From assembly GCF_963853765.1 (NCBI RefSeq), contig NC_088862.1, forward strand, positions 4,526,001-4,590,000: a stretch of 64,000 nucleotides of DNA. The letters run 5' to 3'. The stretch is from Magallana gigas. Taxonomy: Eukaryota. Positions 37,701-40,700 of the stretch are shown here, piece after piece. The translations under genes and the position numbers were made by a program. Positions within the stretch are counted from its first letter, which is position 1; every line of letters starts with the position of its first letter. The notes under the pieces were generated by a model. It was not told where the DNA came from. It did not search any database and saw only the letters and a list, made by a program, of their open reading frames with translations.

Positions 37701-40700
37701 CGGTGGACTTGGAAAGGTTTCAAATAAGATGTTTTTGTTTACATAATAGTAGTCCAAAATTAAGACTTTTGTTGCATTTTATTCTAATTTTAGATAGTTC
37801 ATCAGAAATTAATAAAAGTGAATCATGATATTAATAGTGATATTATTTTCGAACATTTTAAGCATAAATAACCCCCATATTAGTCACATATAAAATGTAC
37901 ATATTTTCACGAAATTGTTTACATTTCATCAAAATGAACATTGGAAATCATGAACTTTGACCTTTTGTATTTATAAAACGGGATGGGCAAAATTCATTTG
38001 AATTTCATGAGAAAAAAGACTTTAGTATAGTAAACAAAATGGTATGTAACTTTGGTACAACCTCTAAAAAATGCAACCCGCAAACCTTACCTTAAATTTA
38101 TGTAAGTTACCGGTACAGTAAAACTTACTAATAATGATATACCTCAGGTACAAAAAAATATGATATATCTAGTAAGTTTATGAAAGTACATTTTAAAACT
38201 AGAGTAATGAAACTAACATGTATATAACTTCACTGTATGAGTGAATTCATTTTAAGCCTGTTTGCTGTAGCTGTGTCATGCTGTAGTAAAGCAGTTTGTA
38301 TTGAATGGGTCATATTTTGCATGCATATTTCAATTGAAATAGGATTTAGGAAGCCTTGAAGTTTTTTCTGCGGAAAAGGGACCCCTGCAGCCACCACTTG
38401 AAGGTGGAGTTTATCCAGAGGGTGGAGATTTAAATGCAGGGATCGGAATGACTCCGGATGACAAATTTAGTCTTGTCCGCAAATTAAGCGACAATCCAGT
38501 CAAAATAATGAACGAAGCTATGACATTTTTGCGTGGACGTAAACCTACGGTATAATTCATCCATGTGTGAAGAGTCTCTCTAGATGTGCCGAGATTTTCT
38601 TGTAGCTGATTTTTCATATTTTTCCTACAAAATTCATCGAAGTGTGGCGAGTAACTTCGCTGACTCTCTAGAAGTTATCCTGATTTCATGTTCTGGGTTT
38701 TTATTCAATACATGCATAAATGTATATAATTCATTAAAAATCACAAGTTTACTTTATAGTTTAACTATCACAAAATGCAGAGGTTTTCTCATAGTTTTTT
38801 TCTTTTGTAACAAGCGGACAATATTTATTATTGGATCATTTATATTTTATCTTATTATGACAACTCATAGCCTTGCCATGTAGATTTTTTCATCTATTAG
38901 TTTTTGTAGCTAGATTTATCTATATTTATTATATCTCTGGGAATATTTTCTATATAAAATTATAGCAAATAAACATGCTTTTATATCTAATCGTGAAATA
39001 GTTTCTATGCTATCTGCCCATGGTGAACAGTCATCAAAACTATTCACCGGCAGCATTCCATTACCCTCTTTTTTTTTTTTTTTACTCTGAACACCTCTGA
39101 CATTATCCAATCACTATATTATATATTCTGCATCGCTGACAAATAAAGTGTTCTTAAGTATTCTTCAGTATAATAAAAAAACCTATTTTAATTACTGACT
39201 ACTCAGGCGATAACAATTTTATTGCCCCCCCCCCCCGACAGCAACTATTTGTTGTGTACGATATATGGCGGAAATTAGTTTTTGAACAAGTTGGCATGGA
39301 TTTGAATTAACGTATTCCTGAATGTGACTATTCTTATACATTTGTGCATGGCAATAGGCAATCTACTTGATTTAACGGAAGCCGCATTCCGCAAAATGCG
39401 CTAAATGAAATACACAGCCAAATGTAGTAACCTGGGTACAGTAGTTGCTGTCTTGGGGGACAATAAATTTGCTATCGTCCTCATAGCCAGTAAATAATTA
39501 TATATAATACATTATTTTTATCAAAAATAAAAATTGCAGAGTACTGTTGAGTATGACAATTATTGTTTCCGTTTGCTTACACTTAGGGTATATAAAAATG
39601 AGTACATTGTAGTTATGATGGAGTGATTAACTCAGATTCCTGTAATTTAAACTGATAGAAATGTTACATAAAGTATTTATGTACAGAAATTTTAAAGAGT
39701 TTTTAGCTCACCTGAACCGAAGGTTCAAGTGAGCTTTTCTGATCACTCGTTGTCCGTCGTCCGTCCGTCCGTCCGTCTGTCCGTCCGTCCGTCTGTAAAC
39801 TTTTCACATTTTTTACTTCTTCTCAAAAACCTCTAGGCCAAATTTAACCAAACTTGGTGCAAAGCATCCTTATGAAAAGGGGATTCTAAATTTTTAAAAT
39901 AAAGCGTACAACCCTTTTTAAAGGGGAGATAATTACGAGACAGTGATAATAGGGTGCATGTCTTAAAAAATCTTCTTCTCAAGAACCACTGCACCAGAAA
40001 TGCCAATATTTACACAAAAGCTTGTATATATAGTGAAGATTCTAAATTGTAAAAATCGTGACCCCCGGACCAAAACTGGGGCCGCAGGCGGGGTTCAAAA
40101 TCTAACATGGAAATACATTGGAAAAATGTTTAAAAATCTTCTTCTCAAGAACCACTGCACCAGAAATGCCAATATTTACACAAAAGCTTGTATATATAGT
40201 GAAAATTCTGAATTGTAAAAATCGCGACCCCCGGACCAAAACTGGGGCCCCAGGCGGGGTTCAAAGTTTAACATTGAAATGCATTGGAAAATGTTTAAAA
40301 ATCTTCTTCTCAAGAACCACTGCACCAGAAATGCCAACATTTACACAAAAGCTTGTATATATAGTGAAGATTCTAAATTGTAAAAATCGTGACCCCCGGA
40401 CCAAGCTGGGGCCCCAGGCGGGGTTCAAAATTTAACATGGAAATACGTAGGAAAAATGTTTAAAAATCATCTTCTCAAGACCCACTGCCATAGAAATGCC
40501 AACATTTACACAAAAGCTTGTATATATAGTGAAGATATTAAATTATAAAAATCGTGACTCCCAGACCAAAACTGGGGCCCCAGGCGGGGTTCAAAGTTTA
40601 ACATAGAAATAAATAGGATAAATGTTTTAAAATCTTCTTCTCAAGAACCACTGCACCAGAAAAGCCAATATTTATATATATTAAGCTTGTATGTATAGTG

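Follow-up and report, generated by a model that had tools for sequence, protein, structure and literature searches.

An intronic block in an oyster ERG-type potassium channel gene is very probably a coding exon, most likely used as an internal in-frame insert

Does a large intron of a potassium channel gene in the oyster Magallana gigas hide a coding exon and, if so, does that exon begin a short isoform of the channel or lengthen the long one? The question is raised by a block of 207 nucleotides (nt) on contig NC_088862.1 (RefSeq assembly GCF_963853765.1), within the 64,000-nt stretch from 4,526,001 to 4,590,000 of the forward strand, which we call the window and to whose first letter all positions below refer. 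The block lies between 35029 and 42035, in a 7-kb intron of a plus-strand gene of the ERG type, and a first-pass annotation made from the DNA alone had proposed it as a hidden exon that yields either an isoform like vertebrate ERG1b or a 69-residue cassette. Our comparison with other oysters indicates that the block very probably represents a real coding exon of the ERG gene, one restricted to oysters, and that its most likely role is that of an internal in-frame insert between the PAS domain and the first membrane helix rather than a vertebrate-style start of a short isoform. We put the probability that it is a genuine coding exon used internally at roughly 0.55.

Two neighbouring exons fix the setting, and we name them by their residues: the KVAQ exon, an N-linker exon upstream of the intron that ends ...EKVAQ, and the VLSLG exon (VLSLG...HYSPFK) downstream of it. 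Against full-length human KCNH2 (8io4_A) the VLSLG exon gives an E-value of 1.7e-13, with 29 of 31 residues identical, and against KCNH1/KCNH5 a far poorer one of about 7e-4. On this similarity the host gene is an ERG-type (KCNH2/6/7-like) potassium channel. Because the exon that ends at 35029 and the one that starts at 42035 both meet the intron in phase 0, the block would be included in phase 0-0. Its insertion point corresponds to the junction of Q376 and V377 in human ERG, which we take to be the point at which the first exon specific to ERG1b meets the shared part of the channel. The first-pass annotation had placed the block at exactly the position of the vertebrate ERG1b exon, and the alignment of the VLSLG exon to human KCNH2 residues 377-407 bears this out. 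In human KCNH2, KVAQ and VLSLG are contiguous, and it is from this contiguity only that we assume an oyster form which skips the block.

A "block" in this context is a run of 69 stop-free codons that starts directly after an AG and ends directly before a GT. Its guanine-cytosine content is 0.444, compared with 0.29-0.30 in the 500 nt on each side and in the intron. These properties had been described in the first-pass annotation, and our recomputation agrees with it on coordinates, translation, flanking codons and base composition, as well as on the in-frame TAG immediately 5' of the block. It also held that the open reading frame (ORF) list misses the block, and the list indeed contains the region only as a 35-residue ATG-initiated ORF (38448..38555) that runs one codon into the intron. 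Translation from that ATG gives, within the block, the 34 residues that had been predicted, including the tripeptide RGR and ending RGRKPT. Stop-free stretches of at least 69 codons are common in this gene, however, with 19 on the plus strand of its three large introns (24.7 kb), so chance could account for the open frame by itself. The block stands above chance because it is conserved and carries a coding signature.

Contigs from relatives were reached via short ORFs of public assemblies found in protein searches. They represent seven further haplotypes of close oysters (L001, L004/5, L009, L002, L010-12, L003 and L013) and one distant oyster-like contig, L007, from a metagenome assembly in ENA. 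All of the fetched contigs are collinear with the genomic sequence of the window and are thus unspliced. Counts given below for eight haplotypes are for the window plus the seven close-oyster haplotypes, several of which are close relatives, and the events counted are few.

Across the seven other oyster haplotypes the block has no indels, and against L002 and L003 it is 92-95% identical with 0 gap columns. For comparison, the VLSLG exon is 97% identical to that of related oysters, and bins of the flanking intron are 58-84% identical with many indels. The block is directly preceded by TAG/G or TAG/A in the window, in L001-L005 and L009-L013, and in L007, where the slash marks the putative splice junction. 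The last 14-18 nt before this acceptor are nearly unchanged among close oysters and still recognisable in L007, of which the remaining intron can no longer be aligned to the window. Hyperconservation of the flanking intron, a hallmark of regulated cassettes, is absent apart from about 15-20 nt at the acceptor. The position of the block relative to its flanking exons is also kept, because three other contigs agree on it: L013 has the KVAQ exon and the block collinear on one genomic contig of a related oyster, in L003 about 1.06 kb separates the block from the VLSLG exon, and L007 has the block 2.3 kb upstream of its VLSLG exon.

The distant contig is informative about the frame as well. L007 has 81 open codons (243 nt) from its TAG/A acceptor to its ACG/GTA donor, compared with 207 nt in close oysters, so the length difference between the lineages is a multiple of three. 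Its extra length falls in the first half, where a longer in-frame, repetitive, acidic segment replaces the counterpart of codons 1-35. Conservation at the protein level ends exactly at the GT, and the tails that reading through the donor would add differ (V-stop versus VPQLLPLFEL-stop). The ATG at 38448 is present in all close oysters, and whether it aligns to a Met in L007 is ambiguous.

Substitutions within the block have the pattern of a translated sequence. In the proposed frame the pairwise ratio of non-synonymous to synonymous substitution rates (dN/dS) is 0.12, 0.11 and 0.20, compared with 1.1-2.3 for the two other frames. Over the whole block the ratio is 0.11-0.24, and frame +0 is the only one free of stops in all sequences. 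The eight haplotypes differ at 26 sites, distributed 4/7/15 over the three codon positions (p 0.009), and whole-block events number 16 synonymous to 13 non-synonymous on about 47 and 160 sites, respectively (Fisher p 4e-5). For the last 29 codons, comparison with L007 gives a dS of 1.24, a dN of 0.144 and a ratio of 0.12 (p 8e-5), with synonymous sites saturated at this distance. The first-pass annotation had named conservation of the frame and dN/dS in related oysters as a check on its proposal, and what we found is an open frame that is kept and a low ratio.

The 5' half deserves separate treatment, since it is here that an internal exon and a first exon with its start at 38448 make different predictions. 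Codons 1-35 contain no ATG in the window's species. In the eight haplotypes they have 11 synonymous and 10 non-synonymous events on 26 and 79 sites (Fisher p 0.003), and between the window and L002 they have 10 synonymous and 4 non-synonymous changes, i.e., a dN of 0.053, a dS of 0.53 and a dN/dS of 0.10 (p 1e-4). The first-pass annotation had translation begin at ATG 38448 with the preceding part untranslated, and these coding-type substitutions, albeit with modest power, argue against that.

Taken with the single-copy status of the block in its own 564-Mb genome (DNA search and six-frame protein search), the absence of indels, the low dN/dS in one frame only, and the splice dinucleotides, phase and position kept in L007 support a coding exon; this support is comparative and does not come from RNA. 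There is good evidence of this kind that the block is translated in the proposed frame and that the translated part ends at the splice donor. A transposon or pseudogene origin was considered and rejected, because both the DNA and the protein search of its own genome show the block to be single copy; the first-pass annotation had listed a match to a transposable element or unrelated pseudogene as something that would overturn its proposal. Pfam has no family that matches the block. Its 3' half is near-invariant, with few synonymous changes among close oysters, and RNA structure or editing was considered as a cause. The segment has no notable fold (z 0.14) and one weak inverted repeat, so this candidate was set aside, and Rfam gave no match in 35030-39050.

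Table 1. Features of the block and of its host gene, in window coordinates.
Feature	Position	Strand	Remarks
PAS/eag domain region	16458-16715	+	Pfam PAS_9 6.5e-11, PAS 1.4e-5
Upstream N-linker exon (KVAQ exon)	34815..35029	+	Ends ...EKVAQ on a complete codon; phase 0 at 3' end
In-frame TAG	38340..38342	+	Its AG (38341-38342) is the putative 3' splice site; kept across lineages
Candidate coding exon (block)	38343..38549	+	207 nt, 69 stop-free codons, phase 0-0
5' half, codons 1-35	38343..38447	+	Variable, Gly/Pro/acidic-rich, predicted disordered, without ATG
Sole in-frame ATG of the block	38448..38450	+	Start codon if the block is an ERG1b-like first exon
Conserved core, codons 38-63	38454..38531	+	Two helices predicted
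Invariant R-K-L-S, codons 46-49	38478..38489	+	Fits a basophilic (PKA-type) kinase consensus
Invariant R-G-R-K, codons 64-67	38532..38543	+	Contains the RxR of the first-pass annotation
Putative 5' splice site GT	38550..38551	+	Context ACG/GTATAA; ACG/GTA in all lineages including L007
Downstream exon VLSLG...HYSPFK (VLSLG exon)	42035..42127	+	Starts on a complete codon; human KCNH2 residues 377-407
Voltage-sensor/pore exon after the VLSLG exon	42355-42693	+	Pfam Ion_trans 5.4e-14

The encoded peptide divides into two parts. In an AlphaFold2 model built from an alignment of eight rows, residues 1-35 are disordered, with a predicted local distance difference test score (pLDDT) of 40-52, and residues 38-50 and 52-63 form helices with a pLDDT of about 89-90. 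L44 to V53 and most of residues 55-69 are invariant, even in L007, and so is the terminal LRGRKPT. Two short motifs, RKLS and RGRK, do not change in any row of the alignment. The general consensus of basophilic kinases is R-R/K-x-S, so RKLS fits as a candidate PKA-type site. RGR fits as a putative arginine-based retention motif, with the proviso that a tripeptide match alone is weak and discriminates weakly.

We favour internal use because codons 1-35 lack an ATG and are nevertheless constrained, and because the acceptor TAG is kept everywhere. The frame is also open from this acceptor in every lineage, lengths change in threes, and the Met is not secure in L007. If the acceptor is the AG within the TAG (38340-38342) and the donor the GT of 38550, splicing would join the block in frame to the exons that end at 35029 and start at 42035, the KVAQ exon being the simplest phase-compatible partner upstream. 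The resulting protein would have 69 residues inserted at the equivalent of human Q376/V377, in the flexible tether that links the PAS/eag domain to S1. The insert would consist of a variable, disordered half rich in acidic residues, Gly and Pro, followed by a strongly conserved basic segment of two helices with RKLS and RGRK. Inclusion could alter the length or the docking of the PAS-to-S1 tether and, through it, deactivation gating, and the insert may also contribute a phospho-regulated or trafficking motif.

Several observations weigh against this internal use. Constraint on codons 1-35 is modest (the ratio is about 0.3, and the related sequences offer few events), and both splice sites of the block are weak, the donor being GTATAA and the pyrimidine tract poor. 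An unseen alternative first exon could be the upstream partner instead of the KVAQ exon. Among sequencing runs, the words of the block are present in 20, of which 7 are labelled as RNA. A second search of the runs used the block extended by 150 nt upstream and 400 nt downstream, for which the exon alone would give a share of about 0.24. The RNA-labelled runs with the block hold 0.63-0.96 of this query, i.e., they contain the intron flanks too, so they reflect unspliced RNA or DNA and the presence of the block in them is no evidence of splicing. Runs of other organisms hold shares of 0.26-0.39, which would fit either RNA with the exon only or merely the conserved part in a relative.

Protein collections add to these counterpoints, since every ORF fragment with the block continues into the intron and an exhaustive phmmer search of 1.84 billion cluster representatives found no long ERG protein that contains it. 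There is thus weak evidence that the block is missing from the major annotated forms. The neighbouring KVAQ exon, a true exon, is likewise held in the protein collections only as unspliced ORFs that read into the intron, so the absence of spliced proteins with the block is uninformative. The phmmer search returned only oyster intron ORFs and chance matches to bacterial beta-propeller repeats, with no similarity to vertebrate ERG, and exact-pattern and degenerate-pattern scans of metagenome contigs from the Joint Genome Institute gave no matches.

One alternative is an ERG1b-like first exon. An intronic promoter would drive transcripts that start translation at ATG 38448, and the resulting 34-residue N-terminus, spliced to the VLSLG exon, would give a PAS-less subunit that speeds deactivation of heteromers. 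The position is right for this, since the block lies in the same intron as vertebrate exon 1b and the exon downstream is the one that aligns to human residues 377-407. Human ERG1b lacks the PAS domain and has an N-terminal RXR that acts as an endoplasmic reticulum (ER) retention signal (PMC11838338), and the RGR of the block is invariant. The Met at 38448 stands at the start of the best-conserved, structured part, with a purine at -3, and a palindrome next to the acceptor (38327-38340), kept in L007, could be a promoter element. Codons 1-35 would, however, be 5' untranslated region, yet their substitutions favour synonymous changes and follow a three-base periodicity, and they have no ATG in the window's species. 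Nor would an untranslated leader account for a frame that is open from a conserved TAG acceptor in all lineages with length changes in threes, and in L007 the Met is not securely aligned. The phmmer search detected no similarity to any vertebrate ERG N-terminus, and because no homology was found, any relation of the block to the vertebrate 1b N-terminus would be convergent. We consider a first exon of this type very unlikely. Of the two options in the first-pass annotation, the coding exon and cassette is the one that fits the comparative data better, and the ERG1b-like first exon has become the less likely one.

An intermediate arrangement would place the block as an internal exon of a PAS-less transcript, with a first exon further upstream in the same intron that splices to 38343. 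Such an arrangement would account for the conserved acceptor and for the coding signature of codons 1-35 as well as for the ERG1b-like position, and a candidate exists: a gap-free island of 106 nt (35951-36056) is 99% identical to L013, compared with 79% for the intron background. The region has an ATG at 35945 whose reading frame stays open as far as 36058, and splicing at a weak GT (35993) would be in phase 0. Such an exon is, however, pure inference. The island has no substitutions from which a frame could be read, the candidate donor is poor, the island may equally be regulatory, and the KVAQ exon is already phase-compatible. The island, for which Rfam has no match, could with the adjoining 35866-35950 serve as a regulatory element, encode a small RNA or act as an alternative first exon, and we regard the PAS-less arrangement as a whole as unlikely. 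A different type of explanation is that the block is not an ERG exon at all, being instead a nested small ORF (35-45 residues from an ATG) or a non-coding element with an accidental frame. All molecules observed are unspliced, the splice sites are weak, open frames of similar length are common in these introns, and no annotated long protein turned out to contain the block, all of which this explanation would accommodate. A non-coding element would not, however, give a dN/dS of 0.12 at a dS above 1 in a single frame, and a nested ORF would neither keep its frame upstream of its own ATG nor lose conservation exactly at the GT with differing C-terminal tails. Three other oyster contigs, in which the block keeps its place and phase with respect to the ERG exons, also argue against this explanation, which we judge decidedly unlikely.

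The vertebrate resemblance nevertheless invites a broader conjecture. Oysters could have independently built a system like ERG1a/1b at the vertebrate intron, in which the block serves a PAS-less subunit (from its own ATG or from an upstream first exon) and RGRK is an ER-retention signal that enforces heteromer assembly. We hold this to be improbable. What the block shares with vertebrate ERG1b (exon 1b of KCNH2) is its intron position, shortness, basic character and the RxR tripeptide. It differs in that no sequence similarity was detected, and in a frame that is conserved from the acceptor through the 35 codons before the ATG. The coincidence with the ERG1b intron is of interest for channel evolution, and present evidence points away from a PAS-less isoform.

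Another invertebrate ERG gene, unc-103 of C. elegans, has multiple alternative first exons, so its N-terminus is likewise diversified by alternative 5' exons. Those first exons have their own promoters, whereas the oyster block, on comparative evidence, behaves as an internal exon. It has more in common with the cassette exons found in cytoplasmic linkers of ion-channel genes: a length divisible by three, phase 0-0, weak splice sites and restriction to a lineage, as well as a product that combines a disordered linker with a short conserved motif. Mammalian EAG1 (KCNH1), for example, reportedly has a 27-residue cassette insert in a cytoplasmic linker. The oyster block, known here from comparative sequence, is unlike known linker cassettes in that it adjoins the VLSLG segment in the PAS-to-S1 tether, and we know of no described cassette at that site, directly before the VLSLG segment.

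An insert at this site would matter because the tether region that positions the PAS/eag domain governs slow deactivation. If the block is included in mRNA, it would place a conserved, probably regulated two-helix module in the tether that positions the ERG PAS/eag domain. It would then offer a natural handle, in a lophotrochozoan, on how the length and composition of the tether tune ERG gating, and an oyster-restricted coding exon would be added to the gene model.

Some further observations concern the sequence at and around the block. A perfect palindrome of 14 nt, ATTTCAATTGAAAT, occupies 38327-38340, its last base being the T of the acceptor TAG. At the equivalent place L007 has ATTTCAC-TGAAAT, and L002 and L003 have imperfect versions. 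The palindrome could bind a protein or form a small hairpin at the 3' splice site.

Several entries in sequence collections need care. Five Logan gene calls (P0001, P0002 and P0022-P0024, on L001, L002 and L009-L012) are 83 residues long and read the TAG before the block as Q. Their 14 N-terminal residues are not real, because the caller's code treats TAG as sense. The Logan contig L008 corresponds to window positions 38070-39013 at 86% identity without indels, and every coding change checked in its ORF, P0007, is C-to-T. L008 and P0007 were considered as a diverged copy or paralogue of the block and rejected, as they come from the same locus and differ from the window by C-to-T changes along their whole length, without indels; from this pattern, L008 is a bisulfite-type library assembled as normal DNA. 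The variants P0020 and P0026, which have odd start codons, are probably artefacts of the same kind. A bacterial transhydrogenase beta subunit of 469 residues (MDQ7956055.1) shares a 90% cluster with P0004, a 56-residue oyster intron ORF, which looks like a clustering error in the collection.

A tandem array of a 166-nt unit, in about 5-6 copies with 83-89% matches, occupies 39966-40962, a large share of the intron that separates the block from the VLSLG exon. All of 39703-41515 is absent from L003, where this part of the intron is about 1.06 kb long, compared with 3.5 kb in the window. Upstream of the block, about 660 nt at 37434-38091 are absent from L009, L010 and L013, which join about 37430 to about 38092-38131, so this segment is probably a recent insertion. 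Four public contigs (L001, L004, L005 and L008) break at 38069/38070 and at about 39040-39052, which suggests repeats on both sides.

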